This document shows, piece by piece, positions 1-60,652 of a stretch of DNA of 64,000 nt. The translations under genes were made by a program, and so were the position numbers. The stretch is taken from contig NC_052152.1 in NCBI RefSeq assembly GCF_902713615.1, positions 209,801,046 through 209,865,045 of the forward strand. The letters are read 5' to 3'. The DNA comes from Scyliorhinus canicula. Taxonomy: Eukaryota. The notes beneath the pieces were generated by a model that was not told where the DNA came from, made no database searches, and saw only the letters and a program-made list of their open reading frames with translations. Each line of letters begins with the position of its first letter. Positions within the stretch are counted from its first letter, which is position 1.

Positions 1-328
1 CGTGTTACAGCACCTGTACAGAAACAGTCAGCACGCGTGTTACAGCACCTGTACAGAAACAATCAGCACGCGTGTTACAGTACCTGCACAGTAAACAGTC
101 AGCACGCGTGTTACAGCACCTCCACAGAAACTGTCAGCACGTGTTACAGTACCTGGTACAGAAACTGTCAGCACGCGTGTTACAGCACCTGTACAGAAAC
201 AGTCAGCACGCGTGTTACAGCACCTGTACAGAAACAGTCAGCACGCATGTTACAGCACCTGATACAGAAACAGTCAGCACGCGTGTTACAGCACCTGTAC
301 AGAAACAGTCAGCACGCGTGTTACAGCA
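1..328 (-). repeat. 35-bp minisatellite (about 9 copies, runs off the window) made of an ERGIC3 splice acceptor plus exon start
   Basis: Minus-strand unit cgtgctgactgtttctgtacag|GTGCTGTAACACG. Confidence 0.9.
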
Positions 329-654
329 GATAATCACAAGGACAGTGCACCATATTTGCAATAACAGACGGGAGTCTCTGCAGGTCAGTCGCCAGCTGGA
401 ATGGACAAACTTTGGGAGTTTCTCCAAACCGTGTGGAGTACATTCTGGAACATTACCCTGGAACACTCTGGAACATTACTCGGGAACACGCTGGAACATT
501 ACTCGGGAACATTACTCCGAGGATCACTCTGCATCTGTCTTCACAAAGGAAGTAACAGATGTGGTTGGCCAACATACAGGGTTGGTGCTGTATATTTGGA
601 TTCACAAAAGGAATTTGATAGACTTATGTGGAAGATCAAAGCACATAGGACTAG

Positions 655-935
655 CACGAGCAGTATGGTGGCACAGTGGTTAGCACTGCTGCCTCAACGT
701 GCCAGGGATCTGGATTCAATACCAGCCTCGTGTGACTGTGCAGAGTCTGCAAGTTCTCCCCGTGTCTGCGTGGGTTTCCTCTGGTTTCCTCCCACAGTCC
801 GAAGATGTGCAGATTAGATGGGGCTGTGGGAACAGGGTGGGGGATGGGCTGAGGTGGTATGCTCTTTCAGAGGGTTGGTGCAGACACGATGGGCCCAATG
901 GCCTCCTTCCAATGGCACTGTAGGGATTCTATGGA
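655..935 (+). mobile_element. tRNA-derived V-SINE/HE1-type SINE
   Basis: A/B boxes, ttctccccgtgtctgcgtgggtttcctc core, CR1-like tail. Confidence 0.85.
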
Positions 936-1456
936 TTAATTGGACAAGGGTAACTTGGAACAAAAAAAGAGATAGGATCACGGTGAACAAATATTTATCT
1001 GCCTTGTGGAATGCATGTAGTAGGTCCAAAGGTCAGTATTAGGATTGTTGTTTTGTGATATATAAATGATATAGGAAATAGGGAGCACAGCACAGGGAAC
1101 ACAGCACAGGGAACAATACTAAACTTTGCCCTGCAGTAAATAGTGAGGAGAATAATTGCAGACTTCAGGGGACTTTTACAGTCTGTTAAGTGGGCAGACT
1201 GGGTAAAGTATAATGTGGATGAGTTTGACGTGATGTACTTGAGGAGAAATAATCTGGTGTTGGTCAGGTAGGCACGAGATGATTATAGATTTTTAAAAAC
1301 CTAGTTGCTCTCTTTGGAAGGAACACTGTTGATCTTTCTGATGTCTTCCATGGGTCACCTGACCAGAAATCCCAGTAGTCTGGGTGACCATTTGTGCAAG
1401 AGCTGCATCTGGCTGGAGCAACTCGAGCTCGGGGTTTTGGAGCCAGGGGGGCATTA

Positions 1457-4260
1457 TAACAAAAGTACAGCACAGGAACAGGCCCTTCGGCCCTCCAAGC
1501 CCGTGCTGCCCGTCTAAACTAAAATCTTCTACACTTCCGGGGTCCGTATCCCAATATTCCCATCCTATTCATGTATTTGTCAAGATGCCCCTTAAATGTC
1601 ACTATCGTCCCTGCTTCCACCACCTCCTCCGGCAGCGAGTTCCAGGCACCCATTACCCTCGGTGTAAAAAAACTTGCCTCGTACATCTCCTCTAAACCTT
1701 GCCCCTCACACCGTAAACCTATGAACACTATACTCCAAGTGTGGCCTAACTAAGGTTCTATACAGCTGCAACATGACTTGCCAATTCTTCTACTCAATGC
1801 CCCGGCCAATAAAGGCAAGCATGCCGTCTGCCTTCTTGACTACCTTCTCCACCTGTGTAACCCCTTTCAGTGACCTGTGGGCCTATACACCTAGATCTCT
1901 CTGACTGTCAATACTCTTGAGGGTTCTACCATTCACTGTATATTCCCTATCTGTATTAGACCTTCCAAATACATTACCTCACATTTGTCCAGATTAAACT
2001 CCATCTGCCATCTCTCCGCCCAAGTCTCCAAACGATCTAAATCCTGCTGTATCCTCTGACAGTCCTCATCGCTATCCGCAATTCCACCAACCTTTGTGTC
2101 GTCTGCAAACTTACTAATCAGACCATCAGTTACATTTTCCTCCAAATCATTTATATATACTACGAACAGCAAAGGTCCCAGCACTGATCCCTGCGGAACA
2201 CCACTAGTCACAGCCCTCCAATTAGAAAAGCACCCTTCCATTGCTACTCTCTGCCTTCTATGAGCTAACCAGTTCTGTATCCACCTTGCCAGCTCACCTC
2301 TGATCCCGTGTGACTTTCCCGTCTGTACCAGTCTGCCATGAGACCTTGTCAAAGGCCTTACTGAAGTCCATAGAGACAACATCCACTGCCCTACCTGCAT
2401 CAATCATCTTTGTGATCTCCTCGAAAAAGTCCATCAAGTTAGTGAGACACGACCTCCCCTTCACAAAACCATGCTGCCTCTCACTAATACGTCCATTTGC
2501 TTCCAAATGGGAAAGATCCTGTTTCTTAAGTAGGTTCCCTACCATAGACGCAAGGTTCGCCAGCCTGTAGTTCCCTGGATTATCCTTGCTACCCTTCTTA
2601 AACAAAGGAACAACATTGGCTATTCTCCAGTCCTCCGGGACATCACCTGAAGACAGTGAGGATCCAAAGATTTCTGTCAAGACCTCAGCAATTTCCTCTC
2701 TAGTTTCCTTCAGTATTCTGGGGTAGATCCCATCAGGCCCTGGGGACTTATCTACCGTAATATTTTTCAAGACGCCCAACACCTCGTCTTTTTGGATCTC
2801 AATGTGACCCATCTATCTACACACCCCGCTCCAGACTCAACATCCACCAATTCCTTCTCTTTGGTGAATACTGATGCAAAGTACTCATTTAGTACCTCTC
2901 CCATTTGCTCTGGCTCCACACATAGATTCCCTCCCCTGTCCTTCAGTGGGCCAACCCTTTCCCTGGCTACCCTCTTGCTTTTTATGTACGTGTAAAAAGC
3001 CTTGGGATTTTCCTTAACCCTATTTTCCAACGACTTTTCGTGACCCCTTCTAGCCCTCCTGACTCCTTGCTTAAGTTCCTTCCTACTTTCCTTATATTGC
3101 ACACAGGCTTCGTCTGTTCCCAGCCTTCTAGCCCTGACAAATGCCTCCTTTTTCCTTTTGACGTGGCCTACAATATCTCTCGTTATCCAAGGTTCCCGAA
3201 ATTTGCCGTATTTATCCTTCTTCCGCACAGGAACATGCCGATCCTGAATTCCTTTCAACTGACATTTGAAAGCCTCCCACATGTCAGATGTTGATTTACC
3301 CTCAAACATCTGCCCCCAATCTAGGTTCTTCAGTTCCTGCCTAATATTGTTATAATTAGCCTTCCCCCAATTTAGCACATTCACCCTAGGACCATTCTTA
3401 TCCTTGTCCACCAGCACTTTAAAACTTACTGAATTGTGGTCACTGTTCCCGAAATGCTCCCCGACTGAAACTTCTACCACCTGGCCAAGCTCATTCCCCA
3501 ATACCAGGTCCAGTACAGCCCCTTCCCTAGTTGGACTGTCTACATATTGTTTTAAGAAGCCCTCCTGGATGCTCCTTACAAACTCTGCCCTGTCCAAGCC
3601 CCTCGCACTAAGTGAGTCCCAGTCAATATTGGGGATGTTGAAGTCTCCCATCACAACAACCCTGTTGCTTTTACTCCTTTCCAAAATCTGTCTACCTATC
3701 TGCTCCTCTATCTCCCGCTGGCTGTTGGGAGGCCTGTAGTAAACCCCCAACATTGTGACTGCACCCTTCTTATTCCTGATCTCTACTCACATAGCCTCGC
3801 TGCCCTCTGAGGGGTCCTCCCGCAGTACAGCTGTGATATTCTCCCTAACCAGTAGCGCAACTCTGCCGCCCCTTTTACATCCCCCTCTATCCCGCCTGAA
3901 ACATCTAAATCCTGGAATGTTTAGCTGCCAATCCTGTCCTTCCCCAACCTGGTCTCTGTAATGGCAACAACATCATAGTTCCAAGTACTAATCCAAGCTC
4001 TAAGTTCATCTGCCTTACCCGTAATGCTTCTTGCATTAAAACATGTGCACTTCAGGCCACCAGACCCGCTGTGTTCAGCATCATCTCCCTGTCTGCTCTG
4101 CCTCACAGCCATACTGGCCCTATTCCCTAATTCTCCCTCAATGCTTTCACCTTCTGACCTATTGCTCCGGTACCCACCCCCCTGCCATACTAGTTTAAAC
4201 CCTCCCGTGTGACACTAGCAAACCTCACGGCCAGGATATTTATGCCTCTCCAGTTTAGAT
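1457..4260 (-). mobile_element. CR1-type LINE (endonuclease + RT), frameshifted and internally deleted
   Basis: ORFs 3921-4112 (FNARSI), 2767-3753 (GVYYRPP, GDFN, SDH), 2294-2812 (KSPGPDG, DFSKAFD), 1933-2403 ([15 protein letters not shown]), plus 3' tail. Confidence 0.93.
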
Positions 4261-4326
4261 GGTCCCTTTGCGAGGTTGAGGGGCGTTTGGATAGTACTTT
4301 CAGGGCAGGGTCACCCTGCAGCCCGA

Positions 4327-6347
4327 GGGAGATCAGGCAGAGAGGGAATGGGAGATCAGGCAGAGGGAGAATGGGAGATCAGGCAGAGAGGGAATGGGAG
4401 ATCAGGCAGAGAGGCAATGGGAGATCAGGCAGAGAGGGAATGGGAGATCAGGCAGAGAGGGAATGGGAGATCAGGCAGAGAGGGAATGGGTGATCAGGCA
4501 GAAAGGGAATGAGAGATCACGCAGAGAGGGAATGGGAGATCAGGCAGAGAGGGAATGGGAGATCAGGCAGAGAGGGAATGGGAGATCAGGCAGAGAGGGA
4601 ATGGGAGATCAGGCAGAGAGGGAATGGGAGATCAGGCAGAGAGGGAATGGGAGATCAGGCAGAGAGGGAATGGGAGATCAGGCAGAGAGGGAACGGGAGA
4701 TCAGGCAGAGAGGGAACGGGAGATCAGGCAGAGAGGGAATGGGAGATCAGGCAGAGAGGGAATGGGAGATCAGGCAGAGAGGGAATGGGAGATCAGGCAG
4801 AGAGGGAATGGGAGATCAGGCAGAGAGGGAATGGGAGATCAGGCAGAGCGGGAAAGGGAGATCAGGCAGAGAGGGAATGGGTGATCAGGCAGAAAGGGAA
4901 TGAGAGATCACGCAGAGAGGGAATGGGAAATCAGGCAGAGAGGGAATGGGAGATCAGGCAGAGAGGGAATGGGAGATCAGGCAGAGAGGGAATGGGAGAT
5001 CAGGCAGAGAGGGAATGGGAGATCAGGCAGAGAGGGAATGGGAGATCAGGCAGAGAGGGAATGGGAGATCAGGCAGAGAGGGAATGAGAGATCAGGCAGA
5101 GAGGGAATGGGTGATCAGGCAGAGAGGGAATGGGAGATCAGGCAGAGAGGGAATGGGTGATCGAGCAGAGAGGGAATGGGAGATCAGGCAGAGAGGGAAT
5201 GGGAGATCAGGCAGAGAGGGAATGGGTGATCGAGCAGAGAGGGAATGGGTGATCGAGCAGAGGGGGAATGGGTGATCAGGCAGAGAGGGAATGGGAGATC
5301 AGGCAGAGAGGGAATGGGAGATCAGGCAGAGAGGGAATGGGAGATCAGGCAGAGAGGGAATGGGAGATCAGGCAGAGAGGGAATGGGTGATCAGGCAGAG
5401 AGGGAATGGGAGATCAGGCAGAGAGGGAATGGGAGATCAGGCAGAGAGGGAATGGGAGATCAGGCAGAGAGGGAATGGGTGATCGAGCAGAGAGGGAATG
5501 GGTGATCGAGCAGAGAGGGAATGGGTGATCGAGCAGAGAGGGAATGGGAGATCAGGCAGAGAGGGAATGGGTGATCAGGCAGAGAGGGAATGGGAGATCA
5601 GGCAGAGAGGGAATGGGTGATCAGGCAGAGAGGGAATGGGTGATCAGGCAGAGAGGGAATGGGTGATCAGGCAGAGAGGGAATGGGAGATCAGGCAGAGA
5701 GGGAATGGGAGATCAGGCAGAGAGGGAATGGGAGATCAGGCAGAGAGGGAATGGGAGATCAGGCAGAGGGAATGGGTGATCAGGCAGAGAGGGAATGGGA
5801 GATCAGGCAGAGAGGGAATGGGAGATCAGGCAGAGAGGGAATGGGTGATCAGGCAGAGAGGGAATGGGTGATCAGGCAGAGAGGGAATGGGTGATCAGGC
5901 AGAGAGGGAATGGGAGATCAGGCAGAGAGGGAATGGGAGATCAGGCAGAGAGGGAATGGGAGATCAGGCAGAGAGGGAATGGGAGATCAGGCAGAGGGAA
6001 TGGGTGATCAGGCAGAGAGGGAATGGGAGATCAGGCAGAGAGGGAATGGGAGATCAGGCAGAGAGGGAATGGGAGATCAGGCAGAGAGGGAATGGGAGAT
6101 CAGGCAGAGAGGGAATGGGAGATCAGGCAGAGAGGGAATGGGAGATCAGGCAAAGAGGGAATGGGAGATCAGGCAGAGAGGGAATGGGAGATCAGGCAGA
6201 GAGGGAATGGGAGATCAGGCAGAGGGAATGGGAGATCAGGCAGAGAGGGAATGGGAGATCAGGCAGAGGGAATGGGAGATCAGGCAGAGAGGGAATGGGA
6301 GATCAGGCAGAGAGGGAATGGGAGATCAGGCAGAGAGGGAATGGGTG
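4327..6347 (+). repeat. 23-bp minisatellite (gggagatcaggcagagagggaat) inside a CR1 ORF1 relic
   Basis: Tandem units run directly into AEREWVTARLRKGERQVVRESP. Confidence 0.95.
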
Positions 6348-6419
6348 ACTGCCAGACTGAGGAAGGGGGAGAGGCAGGTTGTGAGGGAATCCCCCGAGGG
6401 ACAGTCCCTCTGTGGAGTG

Positions 6420-8410
6420 GGGTCTGGAACACTCCTTGTTCTGGTCCTACTCACACCCTCTCCCACAATTCCGTTACACCGGTGACTATATCACAGCCGC
6501 TTCGCGCTCTCGTCTGAACCTGGAAAAGTTATTCAATTTCCACCCCCCTCTCTCACCTTCACATCGTCCATCTCCGACACTCCCTTCCCACCCCCCTCTC
6601 TCACCTTCACATCGTCCATCTCCGACACTCCCTTCCCGGACCTCTCTCTCCTTCACATCGTCCATCTCCGACACTCCCTTCCCTGACCTCTCTCTCCTTC
6701 ACATCGTCCATCTCCGACACTCCCTTCCCTGACCTCTCTCTCCTTCACATCGTCCATCTCCGACACTCCCTTCCCTGACCGCTCACCTTCACATCGTCCA
6801 TCTCCGACACTCCCTTCCCTGACCTCTCTCTCCTTCACATCGTCCATCTCCGACACTCCCTTCCCTGACCGCTCACCTTCACATCGTCCATCTCCGACAC
6901 TCCCTTCCCTGACCTCTCTCTCCTTCACATCGTCCATCTCAGACACTCCCTTCCCTGACCCCTCTCTCCTTCACATCGTCCATCTCTGACACTCCCTTCC
7001 CTGACCCCTCTCTCCTTCACATCGTCCATCTCTGACACTCCCTTCCCTGACCCCTCTCTCCTTCACATCGTCCATCTCCGACACTCCCTTCCCTGACCTC
7101 TCTCTCCTTCACATCGTCCATCTCTGACACTCCCTTCCCTGACCCCTCTCTCCTTCACATCGTCCATCTCCGACACTCCCTTCCCTGACCCCTCTCTCCT
7201 TCACATCGTCCATCTCTGACACTCCCTTCCCTGACCCCTCTCTCCTTCACATCGTCCATCTCTGACACTCCCTTCCCTGACCTCTCTCACCTTCACATCG
7301 TCCATCTCCGACACTCCCTTCCCTGACCGCTCACCTTCACATCGTCCATCTCCAACAGTCCCTTCCCTGACCGCTCACCTTCACATCGTCCATCTCCGAC
7401 ACTCCCTTCCCTGACCTCTCTCCTTCACATCGTCCATCTCCGACACTCCCTTCCCTGACCTCTCTCTCCTTCACATCGTCCATCTCCGACACTCCCTTCC
7501 CTGATCTCTCTCACCTTCACATCGTCCATCTCCGACACTCCCTTCCCTGACCTCTCTCCTTCACATCGTCCATCTCTGACACTCCCTTCCCTGACCTCTC
7601 TCTCCTTCACATCGTCCATCTCCGACACTCCCTTCCCTGACCTCTCTCTCCTTCACATCGTCCATCTCCGACACTCCCTTCCCTGACCTCTGTCTCCATA
7701 TCTGGTGACAGACTGACCACCAATATCCATTACAAACCCACCGACTCCCACAGCTACATCGATTACAGCTCAACCCATTTCTGCAAGGACTCCATCCAAT
7801 TCTCCCAGTTTCTCAGTCTCCACCACATCGGTTCCGATGATGCCACCTTTCAAACCGTGCTTTAGACATGTCTGCCTTTTCCTTAACCAAAGTTCACCTT
7901 TCACCCCATCAGTCTCCAAATTCAAAAGATCATCCACTGGAACTTCCATGATGCCACCACAAAACACATCTTCCCCTCACCTCCCCTGCCAACATTCTGT
8001 CGGGATTGCTCCGTCCATCACCCCCAACCCTTCATCCCCATCCCAAGCAATCGCTGACGGTGCAACACCCTTCACTTCTTCCCTCCTCACTGGCCTGAGG
8101 CGCAAACACTCCTTTCTGGTGAAGCAGTGATTCACTTGCATCTCCTATAATTTGGTCGACTGTATTTGCTGCTCCCAATGGGGTTTCTTCAACACTGGGA
8201 GACAAAATGAAGACAGGGTGACCACTTTCCAGGACACCTTCACTCCGTCAGCAAGCACAGCCCCAACCTTTTCTGTTGCTGGTCATTTCAACTGAGCGTC
8301 TTGCTCTCGCGTCCACATGTCCATCCTCAGCCTGCTGCAATGTTCCAGTGAAGCCCAGCGCAAACTGGAATGACAGCACCTCATCTTCCAATTAGGCACG
8401 TTACATTCTT
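6420..8410 (+). mobile_element. Penelope-like element relic (RT + GIY-YIG endonuclease)
   Basis: EHSLF..LPQFRYTGDYI (degenerate YIDD), FNFHP, LSVSISGDRLTTNIHYKPTDSHSY, HFN, KLE*QHLIFQLGTL. Confidence 0.8.
6545..7690 (+). repeat. 44-46-bp minisatellite inside a Penelope RT relic
   Basis: Unit tccatctccgacactcccttccctgacctctctctccttcacatcg. Confidence 0.95.
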
Positions 8411-8461
8411 CCGAACGCAACTTGCAGATAAAACTGTGTCAGAGGGTGGGAGGTCTTCAAG

Positions 8462-10538
8462 GAGGAGATAGCGAGAGTACAAGGCCAGAGGAGACAGCCA
8501 GAGTACAGGGGCAGAGGAGACAGCGAGAGTACAGGGCCAGAGGAGACAGCGAGAGTACAGGGCCAGAGGAGACAGCCAGAGTACAGGGGCAGAGGAGACA
8601 GCCAGAGTACAGGGCCAGAGGAGACAGCGAGAGTACAGGGCCAGAGGAGACAGCCAGAGTACAGGGGCAGAGGAGACAGCGAGAGTACAGGGCCAGAGGA
8701 GACAGCAAGAGTACAGGGCCAGAAGAGACAGCGAGAGTACAGGGCCAGAGGAGACAGCGAGAGTACAGGGCCAGAGGAGACAGCCAGAGTACAGGGCCAG
8801 AGGAGACAGCGAGAGTACAGGGCCAGAGGAGACAGCGAGAGTACAGGGCCAGAGGAGACAGCGAGAGTACAGGGCCAGAGGAGACAGCGAGAGTACGAGG
8901 CCAGAGGAGACAGCGAGAGTACGAGGCCAGAGGAGACAGCGAGAGTACGAGGCCAGAGGAGACAGCGAGAGTACAGGGCCAGAGGAGACAGCGAGAGTAC
9001 AGGGCCAGAGGAGACAGCGAGAGTAAAAGGCCAGAGGAGACAGCAAGAGTACAGGGCCAGAGGAGACAGCGAGAGTACGAGGCCAGAGGAGACAGCGAGA
9101 GTACGCGGCCAGAGGAGACAGCGAGAGTACGCGGCCAGAGGAGACAGCGAGAGTACGCGGCCAGAGGAGACAGCGAGAGTACGCGGCCAGAGGAGACAGC
9201 GAGAGTACGCGGCCAGAGGAGACAGCGAGAGTACGCGGCCAGAGGATACCAGCGAGAGTACAGGGCCAGAGGAGACAGCGAGAGTACAGGGCCAGAGGAT
9301 GACAGCGAGAGGTACAGGGCCAGAGGAGACAGCGAGAGTACAGGGCCAGAGGAGACAGCGAGAGTACAGGGCCAGAGGAGACAGCGAGAGTACAGGGCCA
9401 GAGGAGACAGCGAGAGTACAGGGCCAGAGGAGACAGCGAGAGTACAGGGCCAGAGGAGACAGCGAGAGCACAGGGCCAGAGGAGACAGCGAGAGCACAGG
9501 GCCAGAGGAGACAGCGAGAATACAGGGCCAGAGGAGACAGCGAGAGTACAAGGCCAGAGGAGACAGCGAGAGTACGAGGCCAGAGGAGACAGCGAGAGTA
9601 CAGGGCCAGAGGAGACAGCGAGAGTACAGGGCCAGAGGAGACAGCGAGAGTACAGGGCCAGAGGAGACAGCGAGAGTACGAGGCCAGAGGAGACAGCGAG
9701 AGTACGCGGCCAGAGGAGACAGCGAGAGTACGCGGCCAGAGGAGACAGCGAGAGTACGCGGCCAGAGGAGACAGCGAGAGTACGCGGCCAGAGGAGACAG
9801 CGAGAGTACGCGGCCAGAGGAGACAGCGAGAGTACGCGGCCAGAGGAGACAACGAGAGTACAGGGCCAGAGGAGACAGCGAGAGTACGAGGCCAGAGGAG
9901 ACAGCGAGAGTACAGGGCCAGAGGAGACAGCGAGAGTACAGGGCCAGAGGAGACAGCGAGAGTACAGGGCCAGAGGAGACAGCGAGAGTACAGGGCCAGA
10001 GGAGACAGCGAGAGTACAGGGCCAGAGGAGACAGCGAGAGTACAGGGCCAGAGGAGACAGCGAGAGTACAGGGCCAGAAGAGACAGCGAGAGTACAGGGC
10101 CAGAGGAGACAGCGAGAGTACAGGGCCAGAGGAGACAGCGAGAGTACAGGGCCAGAGGAGACAGCGAGAGTACAGGGCCAGAGGAGACAGCGAGAGTACA
10201 GGGCCAGAGGAGACAGCGAGAGTACAGGGCCAGAGGAGACAGCGAGAGTACAGGGCCAGAGGAGACAGCGAGAGTACAGGGCCAGAGGAGACAGCGAGAG
10301 TACAGGGCCAGAAGAGACAGCGAGAGTACAGGGCCAGAGGAGACAGCGAGAGTACAGGGCCAGAGGAGACAGCGAGAGTACAGGGCCAGAGGAGACAGCG
10401 AGAGTACAGGGCCAGAGGAGACAGCGAGAGTACAGGGCCAGAGGAGACAACGAGAGTACAGGGCCAGAGGAGACAGCGACAGTACAGGGCCAGAGGAGAC
10501 AACGAGAGTACAGGGCCAGAGGAGACAGCGAGGGTACA
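8462..10538 (+). repeat. 26-bp minisatellite (cagcgagagtacagggccagaggaga)
   Basis: About 80 tandem copies; begins in CR1-like text LADKTVSEGWEVFKEEIARVQGQ. Confidence 0.95.
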
Positions 10539-10542
10539 ATTT

Positions 10543-10848
10543 AAGAACATACAGTGCAGAAGGAGGCCACTCGCCCATCGAGTCTGCACCGACCCACTTC
10601 AGCCCTCACTCCCACCCTATCCCCATAACCTCTCCCAACCTTTTTGGTCACTAAGGGCAATTTCTCATGGCCAATCCACCTAACCTGCACGTCGTTGGAC
10701 TGTGGGAGGAAACCGGAGCTCCCGGAGGAAACCCACGCAGACATGGGGAGAACTTGCAGACTTCACATAGACAGTGACCCAAGCCGGAATCGAACCTGGG
10801 ACCCTGATGCTGTAAAGCAACAGTGCTAACCACCATGCTACTGTGCTA
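10543..10848 (-). mobile_element. V-SINE/HE1-type SINE
   Basis: Reverse complement of the same consensus. Confidence 0.9.
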
Positions 10849-10849
10849 C

Positions 10850-13010
10850 CCATGGTAAATTGGACAAGAAATTAAGGTCCCATGTGATGCAAGGAAAAGT
10901 GTCATAGAGGAACCAGAATGAGCCGAGAGGCAGGAAGCAGAGGGCGAAGGTAGAGGGATTTTCCTGTGACAGGAAATCTGTTTCCAGTGGGATTCGCAGG
11001 GCTCGATGCTGGGCTCCTTCTTATTTGTGCTGCACATTAATCATCTGCACTTAAATGTAAGAGGGAGGAGCACAGACTGCGGGGGGATAGCCACAGACTG
11101 CGGGGGGGATAGCCACAGACTGCGGGGGGGATAGCCACAGACTGCGGGGGGGATAGCCACAGACTGCGGGGGGGATAGCCACAGACTGCGGGGGGATAGC
11201 CACAGACTGCGGGGGGATAGCCACAGACTGCGGGGGGATAGCCACAGACTGCGGGGGGATAGCCACAGACTGCGGGGGGATAGCCACAGACTGCGGGGGG
11301 ATAGCCACAGACTGCGGGGGGATAGCCACAGACTGCGGGGGGATAGCCACAGACTGCGGGGGGATAGCCACAGACTGCGGGGGGGATAGCCACAGACAGA
11401 GGGATAGCCACAGACTGCGGGGGGATAGCCACAGACTGCGGGATAGCCACAGACTGCGGGGGGATAGCCACAGACTGCGGGGGGATAGCCACAGACTGCG
11501 GGGGGGATAGCCACAGACTGCGGGGGGGATAGCCACAGACTGCGGGGGGATAGCCACAGACTGCGGGGGGATAGCCACAGACTGCGGGGGGGATAGCCAC
11601 AGACTGCGGGATAGCCACAGACTGCGGGGGGATAGCCACAGACTGCGGGATAGCCACAGACTGCGGGATAGCCACAGACTGCGGGATAGCCACAGACTGC
11701 GGGGGGATAGCCACAGACTGCGGGATAGCCACAGACTGCGGGGGGATAGCCACAGACTGTGGGGGGATAGCCACAGACTGCGGGGGGATAGCCACAGACT
11801 GCGGGGGGGATAGCCACAGACTGCGGGGGGGATAGCCACAGACTGCGGGGGGATAGCCACAGACTGCGGGATAGCCACAGACTGCGGGGGGATAGCCACA
11901 GACTGCGGGGGGATAGCCACAGACTGCGGGGGGATAGCCACAGACTGTGGGGGGATAGCCACAGACTGCGGGATAGCCACAGACTGCGGGATAGCCACAG
12001 ATTGCGGGGGGATAGCCACAGACTGCGGGGTAGCCACAGACTGCGGGGGGATAGCCACAGACTGCGGGATAGCCACAGACTGTGGGGGGATAGCCACAGA
12101 CTGTGGGGGGATAGCCACAGACTGCGGGATAGCCACAGACTGCGGGGGGATAGCCACAGACTGCGGGATAGCCACAGACTGCGGGGGGATAGCCACAGAC
12201 TGCGGGATAGCCACAGACTGCGGGGGGATAGCCACAGACTGCGGAGTAGCCACAGACTGCGGGGGGATAGCCACAGACTGCGGGATAGCCACAGACTGCG
12301 GGATAGCCACAGACTGCGGGATAGCCACAGACTGCGGGATAGCCACAGACTGCGGGATAGCCACAGACTGCGGGGGGATAGCCACAGACTGCGGGGGGAT
12401 AGCCACAGACTGCGGGGGGATAGCCACAGACTGCGGGATAGCCACAGACTGCGGGGGGATAGCCACAGACTGCGGGATAGCCACAGACTGCGGGATAGCC
12501 ACAGACTGCGGGGGGATAGCCACAGACTGCGGGGGGATAGCCACAGACTGCGGGGGGATAGCCACAGACTGCGGGGGGGATAGCCACAGACTGCGGGGGG
12601 ATAGCCACAGACTGCGGGGGGATAGCCACAGACTGCGGGATAGCCACAGACTGCGGGATAGCCACAGACTGCGGGATAGCCACAGACTGCGGGATAGCCA
12701 CAGACTGCGGGAGGGTAGCCACAGACTGCGGGGGGATAGCCACAGACTGCGGGATAGCCACAGACTGCGGGATAGCCACAGACTGCGGGATAGCCACAGA
12801 CTGCGGGGGGATAGCCACAGACTGCGGGGGGATAGCCACAGACTGCGGGGGGATAGCCACAGACTGTGGGGGGATATGAATGGACTGGTCAGGTGGACAG
12901 AGCAGTGGAAAATGGAATTCTATCCGAAAAAGTGTGAGGTAATGCACTTGGGGAGGACAGCAAGGTCAAGGATTACACTATGAATGGTAGGACTGTGGAA
13001 AGTATCGGAG
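10850..13010 (+). mobile_element. Degenerate CR1 RT fragment hosting the 11070-12876 array
   Basis: HG..GK..RKQR..SG..QGS.LG motifs before the array; WKMEF..KKCEVMHLG after it. Confidence 0.75.
11070..12876 (+). repeat. 18-22-bp minisatellite ((g)n-atagccacagactgc) inside a CR1 RT relic
   Basis: Variable G-run; exits into RLWGDMNGLVRWTEQWKMEFYPKKCEVMHLGR. Confidence 0.95.
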
Positions 13011-13485
13011 TGAATATCTCAGTTGTTCCCATCCTGTGTACCAGGGCACAGGAATGTGTAAATGTCCGGCAGTCTGCTGCAGAATGGCTCGGTGTCTGCA
13101 GTCCTGGCAGCAGGGACTGGAAAGGAGAGTAGGCCCTGGTCTGGGAGTCCAGCTTCGGAATCCCTGCGGGTATGAGAGGCAGGTACATCAAATAAAAATA
13201 AACCATGACCCAGATTGGTCTCCCACCTCCAAATGGTTCAAACAATTGATCCAAGTGCGTGGAGGCCACAGAGTCAAACACACACACAAATGTTTGTCTT
13301 TACCCAGGAGCCCCTTCACTGGTCAGTGTTGACCGTGAGGGAAATGGTGGGACTCCGGTTTGAAGCCAGTACTGCTCCTCAGGTTTCGGTTAACCTGCCA
13401 CATGAAATTCCAACATCTCCGCTCACATTTCACATTTTCATCCAACAGTTCAGCAATGGGATATTTTTTTTAAAAGCATCATAAT

Positions 13486-13700
13486 GGGCAGCACGATGGC
13501 GCAGTGGTTAGCACTGCTGCTTCACAGCAACGGGGACCCGGCTCAATCCCGGCTCTGGGTCACTGTCCGTGTGGAGTTTGCACATTCTCCCCGTGTCTGC
13601 GTGGGTCTCACCCCCACAACCCAAAGATGTGCAGGGTCGGTGGATTGGACATATCTTTTTATTAAAACAGTAAAAAAGAATTGGGCACTGAAATTTATTT
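13486..13700 (+). mobile_element. V-SINE, short subfamily
   Basis: gggcagcacg..tggttagcac head and V core. Confidence 0.85.
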
Positions 13701-13714
13701 TAGAAAAGTAATTC

Positions 13715-14382
13715 CACGGGTTTCTAGGCCGTTTCCACCTCATTCTACTGAACTCCAGCGAATACAATCCGAACCAATTCAATCTCTCCTCATACGTCAG
13801 TCCCGCCATCCCTGGAATCAGTCTGGTAAACCTTTGCTCCCACTGCAGCAAGAACATCCTTCCTCAGAAAAGACGACTAAAACTGCACACACTCGTCCTG
13901 GTGTGGCCTCACCAACGCCCTGTATAATTGCAGCAAGACATCGCTACTCCTGCACTCGACTCCTCTCGCCATGAAGGCTAACATACAGTGGTTAGCACTG
14001 CTGCCTCATGGTGCTGAGAACCCGGCTTCGATCTCAGCTCCGGATCTCTGTCTGTGTGGAGTTTGCACATTCTCCCTGTGCCTGAGTAGGCGCACCCCCA
14101 CAACCCAAAGGTGTGCAGGGTAGCTGAATTGGCCACGCTAAATTGCTCCTTAATTGGAAAAGATTTTAAAAGGCCAACATACCATTTGCCTTCTTTACCG
14201 CCTGTTGTAGCTGCATGTTTGTGACTGGTGGACAAGGACACCCAGGTCTCGTTGCACATTCCCCTCTCCTAATTTATGGCCATTCAGATAATAGTCTGCC
14301 TTCTTGTTTTTGCTACCAAAGTGGATAACCTCACATTTCTCCACATTATACTGCATCTGCCATTCATTTGCCCACTCACTCA
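13715..14382 (-). mobile_element. CR1 RT fragment interrupted by a SINE (13987-14169) with 13-bp TSD
   Basis: ORFs 14195-14383 and 13543-13857; aaggc(t/c)aacatac duplicated at 13974-13986 and 14170-14182. Confidence 0.85.
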
Positions 14383-14601
14383 CAGCAAAAACACAGCAAA
14401 GCGCAGTCCTGGTCTCATATCAAGGACGAGAGGACGTTAACCAGGAATGAGAGTTTGTCAGTTAATCCTCCTCGCCAGCCTGAGTGTAGTTCACCCCAGG
14501 GTTTGGACATAAGATCCCCCTTGACCCCAGCATGAAGAGGATTTCTTTCACTCACTCACTCTCTCTTCCTCAAGTCACAAGAAGCGATCAGTAACACTCA
14601 C

Positions 14602-14692
14602 TTCATGTCCTCGGACTCTGCCCCATAGCAGCTCTCGCACCGGTCTGGGTCCAGTCTCGTGGAATTGAAAACTTCTTCCTGTTTTCCCAATA
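14602..14692 (-). CDS. ERGIC3: ER-Golgi intermediate compartment protein 3, internal exon
   Basis: ctttctctctgtttcag acceptor, AA|gtgagt donor; 91 nt, phase 1 to 2; reads LGKQEEVFNSTRLDPDRCESCYGAESEDM(K), matching the ERGIC3/Erv46 motif LDPDRCESCYGAE..DxK-CCNTC. Confidence 0.92.
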
Positions 14693-14779: not shown

Positions 14780-15395
14780 AACACACGGAACATTGACCCA
14801 GAGAGACAGAACACACGGAACATTGACCCAGAGAGACAGAACACACGGAACATTGACCCAGAGAGACAGAACACACGGAACATGGACCCAGAGAGACAGA
14901 ACACACGGAACATGGACCCAGAGAGACAGAACACACGGAACATTGACCCAGAGAGACAGAACACACGGAACATTGACCCAGAGAGACAGAACACACGGAA
15001 CATGGACCCAGAGAGACAGAACACACGGAACATTGACCCAGAGAGACAGAACACACGGAACATGGACCCAGAGAGACAGAACACACGGAACATTGACCCA
15101 GAGAGACAGAACACACGGAACATGGACCCAGAGAGACAGAACACACGGAACATGGACCCAGAGAGACAGAACACACGGAACATTGACCCAGAGAGACAGA
15201 ACACACGGAACATGGACCCAGAGAGACAGAACACACGGAACATGGACCCAGAGAGACAGAACACACGGAACATGGACCCAGAGAGACAGAACACACGGAA
15301 CATTGACCCAGAGAGACAGAACACACGGAACATGGACCCAGAGAGACAGAACATGGACCCAGAGAAACAGAACACACGAAACATGGACCCAGAGA
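14780..15395 (+). repeat. 30-bp minisatellite (acacacggaacat(t/g)gacccagagagacaga) in an ERGIC3 intron
   Basis: About 20 near-perfect copies with a single T/G polymorphic site. Confidence 0.95.
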
Positions 15396-15925
15396 AAAAA
15401 TCAGTTTCTGCCTCATGATCCATGTATTGATTCACTGGCTGGGTTTATATTCCGGGTGGCTCTGTCCATTAGTGCATAGAAAGCTGTTGCCATTAGATAA
15501 TGGCACAGGGACTGAGAGATACAGATTTATGAATTTGGGCAAGAGATGCTGCTGGGGTGTGGGATGAATTCTTTAACACAGCGGCTGTAATAACCAGGAA
15601 CTCTCTGCCTGCAAGGACAATAGAAGTTGAGACGAATGATGTCAGAAAGAAATTGCATGGGCACTTGGATGTAAATAAACCTGCAGTGATACAGGGATCG
15701 AACGAGCAAATGGAACCGACCCTCTAAGAGCTCTCCACCAGGCCCACCTCCCCACAACCCCGTAACATCTGAGATGGCAACAAAGAGTCTAACATGAGTT
15801 TGAGAGTCAAACAAAACGAATATTTACACAGCACCAGCACTTCGCTGCTGCTTTTCACTCCAGCCACACCTAACTGGCTGGCTCTAATTATACAACAGAA
15901 GGGCTCAACGATTATCACGCCCTCT

Positions 15926-16089
15926 GGGCGGCATTGTAGCACAGTGGTTAGCTCTATTGCTTCACAGCTCCAGGGTCCCAGGTTCGATTCCCGGCTTGGG
16001 TCATTGTCTGTGCAGAGTTTGCACGTTCTCCCTTTGTCTACATGGGTTTCCTCCGGGTCCCGAAAGACGTGCTGTTAGGTGAATTGGAC
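15926..16089 (+). mobile_element. V-SINE truncated by the gap
   Basis: Head and core present up to the N run. Confidence 0.85.
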
Positions 16090-16589
16090 NNNNNNNNNNN
16101 NNNNNNNNNNNNNNNNNNNNNNNNNNNNNNNNNNNNNNNNNNNNNNNNNNNNNNNNNNNNNNNNNNNNNNNNNNNNNNNNNNNNNNNNNNNNNNNNNNNN
16201 NNNNNNNNNNNNNNNNNNNNNNNNNNNNNNNNNNNNNNNNNNNNNNNNNNNNNNNNNNNNNNNNNNNNNNNNNNNNNNNNNNNNNNNNNNNNNNNNNNNN
16301 NNNNNNNNNNNNNNNNNNNNNNNNNNNNNNNNNNNNNNNNNNNNNNNNNNNNNNNNNNNNNNNNNNNNNNNNNNNNNNNNNNNNNNNNNNNNNNNNNNNN
16401 NNNNNNNNNNNNNNNNNNNNNNNNNNNNNNNNNNNNNNNNNNNNNNNNNNNNNNNNNNNNNNNNNNNNNNNNNNNNNNNNNNNNNNNNNNNNNNNNNNNN
16501 NNNNNNNNNNNNNNNNNNNNNNNNNNNNNNNNNNNNNNNNNNNNNNNNNNNNNNNNNNNNNNNNNNNNNNNNNNNNNNNNNNNNNNNNN
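16090..16589. other. Assembly gap (500 N)
   Basis: Exactly 500 N, a round placeholder size; truncates a SINE on the left and a minisatellite on the right. Confidence 0.99.
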
Positions 16590-16808
16590 CCCTCCCGCAG
16601 TGACCTCCCCCTCCCCCTCCCGCAGTGACCTCCCCCTTTCCCCCCCGCAGTGACCTCTCTCCCCCCCTCCCGCAGTGACCTCCCCCCCCCCTCCCGCAGT
16701 GACCTCCCCCCCCCTCCCGCAGTGACCTCCCCCCCCCCTCCCGCAGTGACCTCCCCCCCCCTCCCGCAGTGACCCCCCCCCCCCCCCCCCCCCTCCCCCG
16801 CAGTGACC
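16590..16808 (+). repeat. C-rich ~21-bp minisatellite (ccccctcccgcagtgacctc)
   Basis: Tandem copies at the contig edge; G-runs on the minus strand. Confidence 0.9.
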
Positions 16809-17566
16809 ATCCTCTCTCAGTGTTGTTGGTTATTTGTATCCTCCAAGTGCACAGAGGCCAGCTCACTCGGGATGAGGCACTGAGCAGGTACGGCTCAGTT
16901 GTAAACACTGAGCACTGGAACATTGGGGACATTCTTGTGTTTGGATTAAGATTTATTCTCTGCTCATTCACAGAACAGGCCATTCAGCCCATTGAGCCCG
17001 TCCTGCCATTCACCATCACGGTTCATCAATATCTTAACTCCATCCACCTCATCATTCCAAATCCTTTTTTATCCTCGTCTAGAAATACACCATCAATCTC
17101 AGATATAAAATGAATTAAACGAGCATCAATTGCATTTAGTTGCCAAGAGTTTCATACTGTTACCACCCTTTGTTTGAAGAATTATTTCCTAACTTCTCTA
17201 CTGAACAGATTAACTCTGATTTTAAGGTTATTTTCTTTGCACCTACCCATCAAATCCATTCAAAATTCCAAAAACCTCAATCAAATCAACTCTTCAACCG
17301 TTGATATTACTGGGATACTAGCCGAGTTCATGCAATCTCCCCTCATCAGCTTTTCTTGGGAATCCTGGTAACATTCTGGTCAACTGCGGTGCCCTCCTTC
17401 CGAGGCCATTATCTCATTCTCAGCTGTAGAGCCCAGGCTGTACCAGTGCTCCAGCTGTGGATCGAGCAGGGTTTTGAACGCTTTCAATGGAATGGATCAA
17501 AGAGAGCACCAGAGCAAAAAGGTCAGAACGTGCAGCCACATCAGGAATACAAGATCCAAGTCTTAC

Positions 17567-17727
17567 CATCCTCAAACTCAACGGCTTCATCATAGATGGG
17601 AGGGGCCATCCCAATGGCCTGACCAGAGAAGTAGGGGTTGTAGTATAATCCTTCCCGGAGAGACATGCCAGCAGGAGGCTCACAGTAACCAGTGAGGAGG
17701 GTGAAGATATAACTCTCACCACCATGT
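17567..17727 (-). CDS. CYC1: Cytochrome c1 exon 5 (axial Met ligand)
   Basis: [53 protein letters not shown](G); gcag acceptor, G|gtaag donor; 161 nt, phase 2 to 1. Confidence 0.97.
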
Positions 17728-17973
17728 CTGCACACAACCAAAGCAGAACAATCAGTCCACATGTCTTACAGGCAAGATAAACATTTCAGCAGGAGTTTTT
17801 GAAAGAATGAAGTTTTACAGAAGATCCTGCCTCCTGCAGATTCTGTATCAATTCCTTCTCTTGGCAAAGACTATGGCAAAGGTTTTTGAACCCAAAGTGA
17901 GGTGTTATCATTCTAGATTTTTTTAGAACAATCAATTTTACAGCACAGCCCATTTGCCCCATTTGTGTCAAAT

Positions 17974-19350
17974 AATCCCACTGACCTCCTCTCTCCCCAT
18001 AGCCCTGTATCAATCCCCAAACTAATCCCACTGCCCCGCTCTCTCCCCATAGCCCTGTATCAATCACCAAACTAATCCCACTGCCCCGCTCTCTCCCCAT
18101 AGCCCTGTATCAATCCCAAACTAATCCCACTGCCCCGCTCTCTCCCCATAGCCCTGTATCAGTCCCAAACTAATCCCACTGCCCCACTCTCTCCCCATAG
18201 CCCTGTATCAATCCCCAAACTAATCCCACTGTCCCACTCTCTCCCCATAGCCCTGTATCAATCCCCAAACTAATCCCACTGCCCCACTCTCCCCATAGCC
18301 CTGTATCAATCCCAAACTAATCCCACTTTCCCACTCTCTCCCCATAGCCCTGTATCAAACCCAAACTAATCCCACTGCCCCGCTCTCTCCCCATAGCCCT
18401 GTTATCAGTCCCAAACTAATCCCACTGCCCCGCTCTCTCCCCATAGACCTGTATCAATCCCCAAAATAATCCCACTGCCCCGCTCTCTCCCCATAGCCCT
18501 GTATCAATCCACAAACTAATCCCACTGCCCCACTCTCTCCCCATAGCCCTGTATCAATCCCCAAACTAATCCCACTGCCCCACTCCCTCCCCATAGCCCT
18601 GTATCAATCCCCAAACTAATCCCACTGCCCCGCTCTCCCCATAGCCCTGTATCAATCCCCAAAATAATCCCACTGCCCCACTCTCTCCCCATAGCCCTGT
18701 ATCAATCCACAAACTAATCCCACTGCCCCACTCTCTCCCCATAGCCCTGTATCAATCCCAAACTAATCCCACTGCCCCACTCTCCCCATAGCCCTGTATC
18801 AATCCCAAACTAATCCCACTGCCCCACTCTCTCCCCATAGCCCAGTATCAATCCCCAAACTAATCCCACTGCCCCACTCTCTCCCCATAGCCCTGTATCA
18901 ATCCCAAACTAATCCCACTGCCCCACTCTCCCCATAGCCCTGTATCAATCCCAAACTAATCCCACTGCCCCACTCTCTCCCCATAGCCCTGTATCAATCC
19001 CCAAACTAATCCCACTGCCCCACTCCCTCCCCATAGCCCTGTATCAATCCCCAAACTAATCCCACTGCCCCGCTCTCCCCATAGCCCTGTATCAATCCCA
19101 AACTAATCCCACTGCCCCACTCCCTCCCCATAGCCCTGTATCAATCCCAAACTAATCCCACTGCCCCACTCTCTCCCCATTGCCCTGTATCAATCCCCAA
19201 ACTAATCCCACTGCCCCACTCTCTCCCCATAACCCTGTATCAATCCCCAAACTAATCCCACTGCCCCACTCTCTCCCCATAGCCCTGTATCAATTCCAAT
19301 CTAATCCCACTCTCACCCCATAGCACTGTATTAATCCCAAATAAATCTCA
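17974..19350 (-). repeat. 47-50-bp minisatellite derived from the CR1 ORF2 C-terminus / 3' end
   Basis: Unit aatcccactgccccgctctctccccatagccctgtatcaatccccaaact; minus strand reads QGYGERxGQWD, like the CR1 ends KGIRGYGEKAREWG and GYGVRAGKWS elsewhere in the window. Confidence 0.9.
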
Positions 19351-19707
19351 CTGTCCTGGACACTTCTCATTGCCCCGATCTCTTCCTCGGTTTCAAACAT
19401 TTATTCAATTTTTCCATAAACGATTTAATAGTCTCTGTCTCGAAGATCACCTGAAGGGAGAGTATCCTTTATACCAAGAGCAAAAAGAAAATGCTGCAAA
19501 ATCTCAGCAGGTCTGGCAGCATCTGTAGGGAGAGAAAAGAGCTAATGTTTTGAGTCCAAAGGCTCTTTGTCAAAGCTAACAGACAGACAAAGTGGGAAAT
19601 ATTTATACTGTGGAGTGAGAATGAAAGATGAGTCATAGCCACAGAAACCCAGGGAAACCGGGTGCTAATGGCAGTCCCCAGAGAGAACAAATGGGGAGAG
19701 TAGGTCA

Positions 19708-21405
19708 ACTACAGTGCGGTGTAGGGGAATGCCTATATACAACTGCCTATATACAACTACACTGCGATGAGGGCAATACCTATACAACTGCCAATATACA
19801 ACTACACTGCGATGTAGGGGAATACCTATACAACTGCCAATATACAACTACACTGTGATGTAGGGGAATGCCTATACAACTGCCAATATACAACTACACT
19901 GTGATGTAGGGGAATGCCTATACAACTGCCAATATACAACTACACTGTGATGTAGGGGAATGCCTATACAACTGCCAATATACAACTACACTGTGATGTA
20001 GGGGAATGCCTATACAACTGCCAATATACAACTACACTGTGATGTAGGGGAATGCCTATACAACTGCCAATATACAACTACACTGCGATGTAGGGGAATG
20101 CCTATACAACTGCCAATATACAACTACACTGTGATGTAGGGGAATGCCTATACAACTGCCTATATACAACTGCCTATATACAACTACACTGCGATGTAGG
20201 GGAATGCCTATACAACTGCCTATATACAACTACACTGTGATGTAGGGGAATGCCTATACAACTGCCAATATACAACTACACTGTGATGTAGGGGAATGCC
20301 TATACAACTGTCAATATACAACTACACTGTGATGTAGGGGAATGCCTATACAACTGCCAATATACAACTACACTGTGATGTAGGGGAATGCCTATACAAC
20401 TGCCAATATACAACTACACTGCGATGTAGGGGAATGCCTATACAACTGCCAATATACAACTACACTGTGATGTAGGGGAATGCCTATACAACTGCCTATA
20501 TACAACTGCCTATATACAACTACACTGCGATGTAGGGGAATGCCTATACAACTGCCTATATACAACTACACTGTGATGTAGGGGAATGCCTATACAACTG
20601 CCAATATACAACTACACTGTGATGTAGGGGAATGCCTATACAACTGTCAATATACAACTACACTGTGATGTAGGGGAATGCCTATACAACTGCCAATATA
20701 CAACTACACTGTGATGTAGGGGAATGCCTATACAACTGTCAATATACAACTACACTGCGATGTAGGGGAATGCCTATACAACTGCCAATATACAACTACA
20801 CTGCGATGTAGGGGAATACCTATACAACTGCCTATATACAACTGCCTATATACAACTGCCTATATACAACTACACTGCGATGTAGGGGAATGCCTATACA
20901 ACTGCCTATATACAACTACACTGCGATGTAGGGGAATGCCTATACAACTGCCTATATACAACTACACTGCGATGTAGGGGAATGCCTATACAACTGCCTA
21001 TATACAACTACACTGCGATGTAGGGGAATGCCTATACAACTGCCTATATACAACTACACTGCGATGTAGGGGAATGCCTATACAACTGCCTATATACAAC
21101 TACACTGTGATGTAGGGGAATGCCTATACAACTGCCTATATACAACTACACTGTGATGTAGGGGAATGCCTATACAACTGCCTATATACAACTACACTGC
21201 GATGTAGGGGAATGCCTATACAACTGCCTATATACAACTACACTGCGATGTAGGGGAATGCCTATACAACTGCCTATATACAACTACACTGCGATGAGGG
21301 CAATACCTATACAACTGCCTATATACAACTACACTGCGATGTAGGGGAATGCCTATACAACTGCCTATATACAACTACACTGCGATGTAGGGGAATACCT
21401 ATATA
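19708..21405 (+). repeat. 46-bp minisatellite (cactgtgatgtaggggaatgcctatacaactgccaatatacaacta)
   Basis: About 36 copies with an internal 12-14-bp subrepeat. Confidence 0.95.
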
Positions 21406-24400: not shown

Positions 24401-24533
24401 TGGGCAGTAAGGCAGCATTGAGTGCCCTGGGCAGTAAGGCAGCATTGACGGCCCTGGACAGTAAGGCAGCATTGACGGCCCTGGACAGTAAGGCAGCATT
24501 GACTGCCCTGGACAGTAAGGCAGCATTGAGTGC

Positions 24534-26333: not shown

Positions 26334-27309
26334 GTGCCCTGGACAGTAAGGCAGCATTGAGTGCCCTGGACAGTAAGGCGGCATCGAGTGCCCTGGACAG
26401 TAAGGCAGCATTGAGTGCCCTGGACAGTAAGGCAGCATTGAGTGCCCTGGACAGTAAGGCAGCATTGAGTGCCCTGGACAGTAAGGCAGCATTGAGTGCC
26501 CTGGACAGTAAGGCAGCATTGAGTGCCCTGGACAGTAAGGCATTGAGTGCCCTGGACAGTAAGGCAGCATTGACTGCCCTGGACAGTAAGGCAGCATTGA
26601 CGGCCCTGGACAGTAAGGCAGCACTGACTGCCCTGGACAGTAAGGCAGCATTGACTGCCCTGGACAGTGAGGCATTGACTGCCCTGGACAGTGAGGCATT
26701 GACTGCCCTGGACAGTAAGGTGGCATTGAGTGCCCTGGACAGTAAGGCAGCATTGACTGCCCTGGACAGTAAGGCAGCATTGACTGCCCTGGACAGTAAG
26801 GCATTGACTGCCCTGGACAGTGAGGCATTGACTGCCCTGGACAGTAAGGCAGCATTGACTGCCCTGGACAGTGAGGCATTGACTGCCCTGGACAGTAAGG
26901 TGGCATTGAGTGCCCTGGACAGTAAGGCAGCATTGACTGCCCTGGACAGTAAGGTAGCATTTGACCAAGTGTGGCATCAAGGAGCCCCCTCAGAATTGAA
27001 GTCAATGGGAACCAGAGGTAAGGCTCCACTGGCCAAAGACTGAAGTCGACCAGCTATATAAATATGGTGGCTACAAGAGCAGGTCAGAGGCCAGGAATCC
27101 TGCGGCGAGTAATTCAGCTCCTGACTCACTAAAGTCTGTCCACCGTCTACAAGGCACAAGACAGGAATGTAATGGAATACTCTCCACTTGCCTGGATTAG
27201 TGCAGCCCCAACTACACTCAAGAAGTTCATCACCATCCAGGACAAAGCTTCCCACCCACTAACATTCACCCCCTCCACCACCGATGCACAGTGGCAGCCG
27301 TGTGTACCA

Positions 27310-34522: not shown

Positions 34523-34897
34523 AACCTCTCACCTCTCATTTGTTTAAACTATAGAGAATACAGGCTGAGTTTCCTTCATCGATCCTCAGAGAACAATCCC
34601 ATTATCCCAGGATTGAGTCTGGTGAAGATTTGTTGCAATCTTTGTGGTCAGTAAATCCTTCCACAGGTAAGGAGATCAAAACTGTACAATATTTAAAGAG
34701 TTCAAAATTACACAAGGAAAAAAATCACACAAGCTGCTAAATTATAAAAGACAAAAAACAATGAGAAACCAGTTGCTTCAGCTCAGACTGCCAACAGATT
34801 AAAGGATCATTGCAATATTAATTACAGGGAGGCTGTAGTTACACAGCTTACATACAAATATTCAATTGATCATTATACAGTTGCAGGACATGTATGT

Positions 34898-60390: not shown

Positions 60391-60571
60391 TGTTCGGGCC
60401 GCGATTCCGGGGCTCCGCCCGCCTTCCGCAGCCGCTCCGCCACTGGGCCCCGGGGTGACCTTGAGGGGAGGGAGGCTCTGGCAGTGATTTCCTGGCCTCG
60501 CTGTGGGTCTGCAGCCCGGGCCCGGCCGGGACTCAGCTGCCAGCGCCGCCCAGCCGCTCCGCCGCCCTCAC

Positions 60572-60652
60572 CTTGCACAAGTGGAAGGTTTTCTGCCGCG
60601 TGTGGAGGAGGCGTCCGCTCCCCGCCGCCGCTGCCGCCCGCAACGCCGCCAT
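60572..60652 (-). CDS. CYC1: Cytochrome c1 exon 1 (N-terminal mitochondrial presequence)
   Basis: AAG ATG GCG GCG context; encodes MAALRAAAAAGSGRLLHTRQKTFHLCK (81 nt, Arg/Ala-rich, no acidic residues); donor AAG|gtgagg; phase 0 matches exon 2; lies in a CpG-rich region. Confidence 0.85.

Follow-up and report, generated by a model that had tools for sequence, protein, structure and literature searches.

The window analysed here is a stretch of 64,000 nucleotides from the shark Scyliorhinus canicula, to whose first base all positions refer. It contains a single exon of the gene ERGIC3, exon 5, on the minus strand, followed on that strand by the visible part of intron 5 and then by a 35-bp minisatellite that reaches the window edge. 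Each unit of this minisatellite carries the end of an intron and the beginning of an exon, and it corresponds to the junction between intron 5 and exon 6 of the host gene. The features discussed below are collected in Table 1; a slash in sequences and motifs marks the exon boundary.

Table 1. Features of the window and their positions
Feature	Position	Strand	Basis or remark
35-bp minisatellite	1-328	-	At least 9.3 copies; Tandem Repeats Finder, unit alignment, match to outgroup exon 6
Nine acceptor-like AG/G sites, spacing approximately 35 nt	14-296	-	AG at 296-295, 260-259, 225-224, 190-189, 154-153, 121-120 (GAG), 85-84, 50-49, 15-14
First exon-like copy on the gene strand	308-329	-	Without an acceptor in front (...gtgattatc); match of at least 17/22 starting at 329
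Visible ERGIC3 intron 5	329-14601	-	Tandem repeats and a broken LINE copy; no exon 6 body by tblastn
Non-LTR (LINE) fragment	1936-3786	-	Pfam
Minisatellite, 23 bp x 88	4327-6345		
Minisatellite, 26 bp x 80	8462-10538		
Minisatellite, 21 bp x 90	11071-12876		
Intron-5 donor GTGAGT	14596-14601	-	Read from sequence
ERGIC3 exon 5, 91 nt	14602-14692	-	Ends ATG AA; protein matches
Stretch of 500 N	16090-16589		1.4 kb upstream of exon 5; abuts a 24-bp array at 16590-16789
Minisatellite, 27 bp x 107	21691-24533		
Non-LTR (LINE) fragment	33217-34539	-	Pfam
Non-LTR (LINE) fragment	39696-40580	-	Pfam
Non-LTR (LINE) fragment	50847-53453	+	Pfam

ERGIC3 exon 5 and its surroundings

Exon 5 was assigned to ERGIC3 in a scan of 1.8 billion proteins, with ERGIC3 of Carcharodon carcharias as the best match (93% identity, E = 7e-14, tblastn), whereas a Pfam search of the 30-residue exon-5 piece alone gave no match to the ERGIC3 families (ERGIC_N and COPIIcoated_ERV) or any other. 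It translates as LGKQEEVFNSTRLDPDRCESCYGAESEDM and its acceptor flank reads ...tctctgtttcag (...tttcag). The GTGAGT donor and the identity to the Carcharodon protein bear out the initial annotation, which had read this exon as a part of ERGIC3 ending in ATG AA. Because of this ending, one further base, G or A, is needed to complete a Lys codon. The continuation K-C-C-N-T-C given there likewise proved correct, as K/CCNTCADV was found in every chondrichthyan ERGIC3 protein retrieved; these proteins read ...SEDMK/CCNTCADVREAYRRKGW, and the positions are invariant in an alignment of 11 sequences. Compared to exon 5 of Callorhinchus, the exon shows 13 synonymous and three replacement changes, counted by eye from the alignment. 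At its start it has TA (14691-14692, minus strand) where Callorhinchus has AG, which completes a Glu codon; with any preceding base TA gives Val, Leu, or Ile, and Glu is present in 11/11 of the aligned chondrichthyan ERGIC3 sequences.

Searches with tblastn using three ERGIC3 proteins detected no exon 6 body in positions 1-14601, and exons 1-4 were not detected by tblastn in 14693-64000, which leaves exon 5 as the only ERGIC3 exon in the window. With a run of 500 N a short distance upstream of exon 5, the lack of exons 1-4 in the window may have a technical rather than a biological cause, namely a gap in the sequence or a faulty scaffold join at this point; the alternative is an upstream intron of more than 47 kb. 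When the exon-6 peptide was searched among short contigs, only non-chondrichthyan fragments were recovered, all of the CDDVREAYRRRGW type. In Scyliorhinus torazame, a partial protein starts with NTCADV at base 92 of a 43-kb contig. Such a contig start would be consistent with an assembly that broke at a repeat immediately before exon 6; we take this as a weak hint, and the two species may differ.

In Callorhinchus, the whole ERGIC3 gene takes up 12.7 kb; it covers 30.8 kb in the skate and 42 kb in Mobula, and in three sharks it reaches 52-56 kb. That of S. canicula is much more stretched than in any of these species. This fits the report that genome growth in elasmobranchs accompanies intron elongation and the appearance of tandem-repeat-dominated regions (bioRxiv 10.1101/2025.06.08.657570). 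Tandem repeats account for 51% of positions 1-14601 (14.6 kb, the 35-bp array included) and for 27% of the whole window, in which approximately 20 arrays with units of 21-50 bp were found. Large minisatellites unrelated to the 35-bp array lie at 4327-12876 and 14780-26961, with units in the same range of 21-50 bp and individual lengths of up to 2.8 kb. The non-repeat remainder of the window consists largely of broken LINE copies with Pfam matches to endonuclease and reverse transcriptase domains.

Structure of the 35-bp array

For positions 1-328, Tandem Repeats Finder reported a period of 35, 9.3 copies, 91% matches, and a score of 552. With head-to-tail copies of a unit between 10 and 100 bp, the array is a minisatellite in the usual sense, and because its reported start coincides with base 1 it is cut by the window edge. 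Within the window the full 35-mer is confined to 1-328, where it has six matches at up to three mismatches, versus 0.00 expected. The period and the nine full units with AG/G agree with the tandem array of acceptor-bearing units that the initial annotation had described here.

On the gene strand (minus), the unit is composed of 13 nt corresponding to the end of intron 5, tgtttctgtacag, and 22 nt corresponding to the start of exon 6, G TGC TGT AAC ACG CGT GCT GAC. The exon-like part encodes C-C-N-T-R-A-D, whereas the protein has C-C-N-T-C-A-D at this point; after GAC the unit reverts to tgtttctg, where the real exon reads GTG CGG. CCNT is encoded in seven of the ten exon-like copies, YCNT in two, and CCNM in one. 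At the position of the invariant Cys every visible copy has CGT (Arg), so that an authentic copy must differ from all nine of them. At the 5' boundary of the array, the exon-like copy at 308-329 stands without an acceptor. The copies depart from their own consensus by approximately 13 events in 315 nt, several of the variants being common to neighbouring units, and the array is therefore either young or homogenised.

In the minus-strand alignment of the nine full units, 27 of 35 columns are invariant, and AG/G is present in all nine (YAG/G in eight and GAG/G in one, at 121-120). The earlier observation that all full copies keep AG/G is thus accurate, but as a signal of selection the retention carries no weight because so many columns are invariant (P of approximately 0.45 for three given columns). 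Selection on AG/G was considered and rejected as unsupported; the variable unit positions in fact crowd at -3 to -5, directly beside it. The CTGAC that had been described as branch-point-like has to be read differently as well: given that the unit joins an intron end to an exon start coding CCNT-R-AD, CTGAC belongs to the Ala-Asp codons GCT GAC of the exon and was duplicated together with them; it could nonetheless serve the next copy as a branch site.

No Rfam or tRNA match was obtained in a scan of the whole window, and the plus-strand open frames running through the array (110 and 226 aa) matched no family; as genes they were rejected, since they are by-products of a unit that is free of stops in those frames. 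For the array RNA, a single extended, imperfect hairpin is predicted (MFE -134 kcal/mol, versus -119.7 +/- 5.4 for shuffled sequences; z = -2.6), and 3 of 100 shuffles fold equally well. Such a hairpin could hide the acceptor copies, which, the predicted signal being modest, is an idea rather than a finding. The unit also contains two palindromes of 8 nt, CACGCGTG, which crosses the unit boundary, and CTGTACAG, which crosses the AG (window 1-345, minus strand). The change of T to C that replaces Cys by Arg, the only base departing from the real exon, completes the palindrome CACGCGTG.

Origin of the repeat unit

The ERGIC3 loci of Callorhinchus (elephant fish) and the skate Rhinoraja were compared as outgroups. 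Intron 5 is approximately 110 bp long in Callorhinchus, where exon 6 starts ...tgtgtgcag/A TGC TGT AAC ACG TGT GCA GAT GTG, and approximately 365 bp long in Rhinoraja, where it starts ...gccgctgcag/G TGC TGC AAC ACC TGC GCT GAC GTG. The exon-like 22 nt of the unit agree with each of the two at 18/22 positions, while the outgroups agree with each other at 16/22, and a base present in neither outgroup occurs only at unit position 14, the C that makes the Cys codon Arg. In terms of residues, the unit matches CCNTCAD at 6/7. The origin from the ERGIC3 junction that had been suggested for the unit is strengthened by these comparisons, because the match extends over 22 exon nucleotides and seven codons instead of 13 nucleotides and four codons.

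A match of at least 6/7 to CCNTCAD occurred in 0/300 simulated 64-kb strands, and a match of 18/22 nt to either outgroup exon start, on either strand, in 2/200 simulated windows; neither count takes into account that strand, phase, and side of exon 5 must also be correct and that an AG must precede. In the window, the strand of the array is that of the gene, its position is downstream of exon 5, and its phase is the one that completes AA+G. The unit thus holds both intron and exon sequence of a real junction of its host gene, as does the repeat unit in intron 7 of human F7. Judged from these matches, it derives from the intron-5/exon-6 junction of ERGIC3, and chance is excluded.

No junction-derived array was found in intron 5 of Callorhinchus or Rhinoraja, so that the array is lineage-specific. 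Its absence from both outgroups also means that it is not a conserved regulatory device, and the proposal of the initial annotation that copy number tunes productive versus NMD splicing finds no support. Intron 5 of Rhinoraja is itself filled with G-rich low-complexity repeats of the GAGG and GGGGGA types (locus 7332-7620), which end approximately 50 bp before the exon-6 acceptor.

Repeat copies as candidate splice acceptors

The base at -3 of the nine acceptor-like sites is C in eight and G in one. The share of pyrimidines at -19 to -3 is 0.59-0.65 in the copies. It is 0.71 and 0.53 in the exon-6 acceptors of the two outgroups, so that the unit value of 0.65 falls within their range, and a higher 0.89 in the exon-5 acceptor. 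The A of the branch-like CTGAC is located at -15, at the short end of the usual range (about 15-40 nt), and a TGTAAC motif was read by eye farther upstream of it. With the preceding AG as far away as -37, no other AG intervenes between a site and its own candidate branch sites. As far as such motifs can indicate, each copy is a plausible pseudo-acceptor. The copies read CAG/GTGCTG or CAG/GTACTG, which, in a check by eye for recursive sites, have the GT of a donor with positions +4 to +6 off the consensus.

When exon 5 is joined to the copies in silico, translation stops after 6-61 codons at seven of the nine sites, and the last two frames run off the window. The expectation that use of a decoy would frameshift or stop the protein is borne out by these stops, and a premature stop resulting from alternative site choice, one mark of AS-NMD, is found at the same seven sites. 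Its other mark, conservation across related lineages, is not seen in Callorhinchus and Rhinoraja. The annotated isoforms of other shark species show no variation at the exon 5/6 junction.

Formation of the array and alternative explanations

In our view, the array is probably a lineage-specific minisatellite that arose by duplication of the junction, whose last copy would be the authentic acceptor and whose remaining copies would be a neutral or mildly harmful by-product. A 35-bp segment that spans the intron-5/exon-6 junction was probably duplicated in place and in tandem, through replication slippage or unequal exchange, and then expanded, in a setting of elasmobranch introns heavily colonised by minisatellites, where such repeats would form readily. 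As a copy carries the last 13 bases of the intron and the first 22 of the exon, it constitutes a pseudo 3' splice site, equipped with CTGAC or TGTAAC resembling a branch site, with a pyrimidine tract of modest quality, and with YAG/G. The authentic acceptor would most likely be that of the last copy, just outside the window, its exon-like part continuing ...CADVREAYRR; the last unit would then run in frame into CADVREAYRRKGW... This site would be preferred under exon definition, since only that copy has the rest of exon 6 and its donor behind it, and pairing between copies may favour it as well. Transcripts spliced to any other copy would gain a premature stop and be removed by nonsense-mediated decay. 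A regulatory function for the array is considered less likely than a by-product that is neutral or slightly deleterious.

Two observations do not follow from this simple model. On the gene strand, the first element of the array is an exon-like copy without an acceptor (308-329), which a one-step duplication does not predict, so that a later deletion at the boundary has to be assumed; and all visible copies have Arg in place of the invariant Cys. It seems fairly unlikely that the array lies directly before exon 6 with the spliceosome skipping at least nine near-identical upstream acceptors, or that a substantial fraction of ERGIC3 transcripts is lost to the copies in a manner dependent on copy number.

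The same two irregularities, the Arg codon in all copies and the uneven 5' boundary, would be accommodated if the array had been seeded by the junction but no longer lay beside exon 6, either separated from it by insertions or displaced as a partial copy, and were now an inert deep-intronic repeat. No exon 6 body is present in the window, and insertions and expansions are abundant in the intron, which would be in keeping with such an orphaned array. However, separation would require an additional event exactly at the boundary between array and exon, and since the expansion of a minisatellite takes place locally, on the sequence already present, the junction that seeded it must have lain at this site. 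We assign this explanation a low probability.

Regulated unproductive splicing, in which the copies act as decoy acceptors whose number sets the share of transcripts entering NMD, or in which a dedicated mechanism silences them, appears distinctly improbable. Each copy is acceptor-like, with an apparent strength equal to that of the presumed authentic site, the use of a copy gives premature stops, and the predicted hairpin would pair the CUGUACAG motifs that hold the AGs, which offers a possible masking mechanism. But the arrangement is absent from both outgroups and hence not conserved, AG/G is retained no more than expected, and the array is one among many unrelated minisatellites; moreover, no variation at the exon 5/6 junction appears in annotated isoforms of sharks (other species), and the z-score of the fold is modest, with 3 of 100 shuffles equal to it.

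There is a comparably small chance that the ERGIC3 copy in the window is decaying or misassembled: it may be partial or pseudogenised, or a scaffold may have been misjoined, with exon 6 overrun by the repeat. One ERGIC3 exon in 64 kb contrasts with whole genes of 52-56 kb in three other sharks, the 500-N join lies 1.4 kb upstream of exon 5, and the TA start of exon 5 loses a Glu that is invariant in 11 chondrichthyan sequences. Nevertheless, the reading frame of exon 5 is intact, its splice sites are canonical, and most of its differences from Callorhinchus are synonymous; the look-ups made returned one ERGIC3 locus per species, and very long introns occur in sharks with large genomes. Finally, it is scarcely credible that an unrelated minisatellite resembles the exon start by chance, for although YAG/G is common in random 35-mers (by estimate, roughly 1 in 4 per strand) and approximately 20 arrays are present, the agreement at 6/7 residues and at 18/22 nt with two outgroups, on the right strand, in the right phase, and on the right side of exon 5, speaks against it, and the simulations (0/300 and 2/200) effectively refute it.

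Comparison with known systems and significance

The closest counterpart is found in intron 7 of human F7, a VNTR of 37 bp in which the first unit spans the exon-7/intron-7 boundary and thus contains the authentic donor, with 5-9 identical pseudo-donors behind it (Borensztajn et al. 2006, PMC1557585). Although functional, the pseudo-donors normally stay silent, since the site farthest upstream is the one that wins (PMC1557585). The two repeats are alike in having a unit that contains a junction, in unit length (37 versus 35 bp), and in copy number. They differ in that F7 duplicates a donor, with the authentic site first in the transcript, whereas the shark array duplicates an acceptor, with the authentic site expected to be last. 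As this site would lie downstream of all pseudo-sites, a 5'-to-3' preference would work against it. For F7, both the junction unit and transcript usage were demonstrated, whereas the shark array is known from sequence and its authentic unit would lie outside the window. By analogy, the shark array would be an acceptor-side mirror image of the F7 VNTR.

Competition of identical tandem 3' splice sites for one donor is also a feature of engineered acceptor duplications in G-gamma-globin, for which, as summarised in PMC1557585, outcomes conflict, with reports of splicing at the proximal copy only, in the classic constructs, and of opposite results. If the proximal copy is used in this way, upstream copies would be heavily used and dangerous competitors, which is hard to square with a working housekeeping gene and tells against the simple model. 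According to that summary, the globin constructs are artificial and have two copies; the shark array is natural, with at least nine copies at a spacing of 35 nt and 22 exon nucleotides in each. Expanded CAG repeats act as splice acceptors and yield aberrant transcripts (bioRxiv 10.1101/2023.10.16.562581), and in that case, too, a long series of AG acceptors comes from a tandem repeat. The CAG repeat, however, is a trinucleotide that does not derive from a junction and causes a pathogenic gain of acceptors, while the shark unit copies a genuine acceptor together with the start of its exon. In C. elegans, intronic minisatellites are statistically linked to splicing choices (PMC4039745).

The array would further share closely spaced alternative acceptors, and frameshifting choices coupled to NMD, with NAGNAG acceptors, poison exons, and AS-NMD. 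NAGNAG acceptors are 3 nt apart and keep the frame, and AS-NMD sites are usually conserved, whereas the shark array is absent from both outgroups. An acceptor-side junction minisatellite was not found described in the literature searched, and examples may exist elsewhere.

If the last unit is a working acceptor, the locus represents a natural experiment in the choice of a 3' splice site among near-identical neighbours, a question that the human F7 VNTR has answered for donors only. Should the copies be skipped in favour of the last acceptor, this would contradict the simple rule that the first suitable AG after the branch point is taken, from 5' to 3'. The locus also illustrates a cost of the expanding minisatellites that inflate elasmobranch introns: a repeat can seed on a splice junction of a housekeeping gene and so multiply cryptic sites. 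If exon 6 is not adjacent or the copies are never used, it is a tidy curiosity about the origin of a repeat and nothing more.

Other features of the locus

The domains of the LINE copy at 1936-3786 are distributed over three overlapping open pieces in different frames, which implies at least two frame changes and a broken copy; the plus-strand LINE at 50847-53453 is split into at least two pieces. No gene was recognised in the region 59737-61739, which comprises a very G-rich block (59907-60300 being scored as a degenerate run of G) followed by clean arrays of 43 bp x 6.9 and 33 bp x 23.8. Romo1 lies antisense within a downstream intron of ERGIC3 in Callorhinchus (locus 8349-9700), Rhinoraja (24372-26598), Hemiscyllium, Mobula, Carcharodon, and Heterodontus, and the position of Romo1 within ERGIC3 is a conserved nested-gene arrangement.
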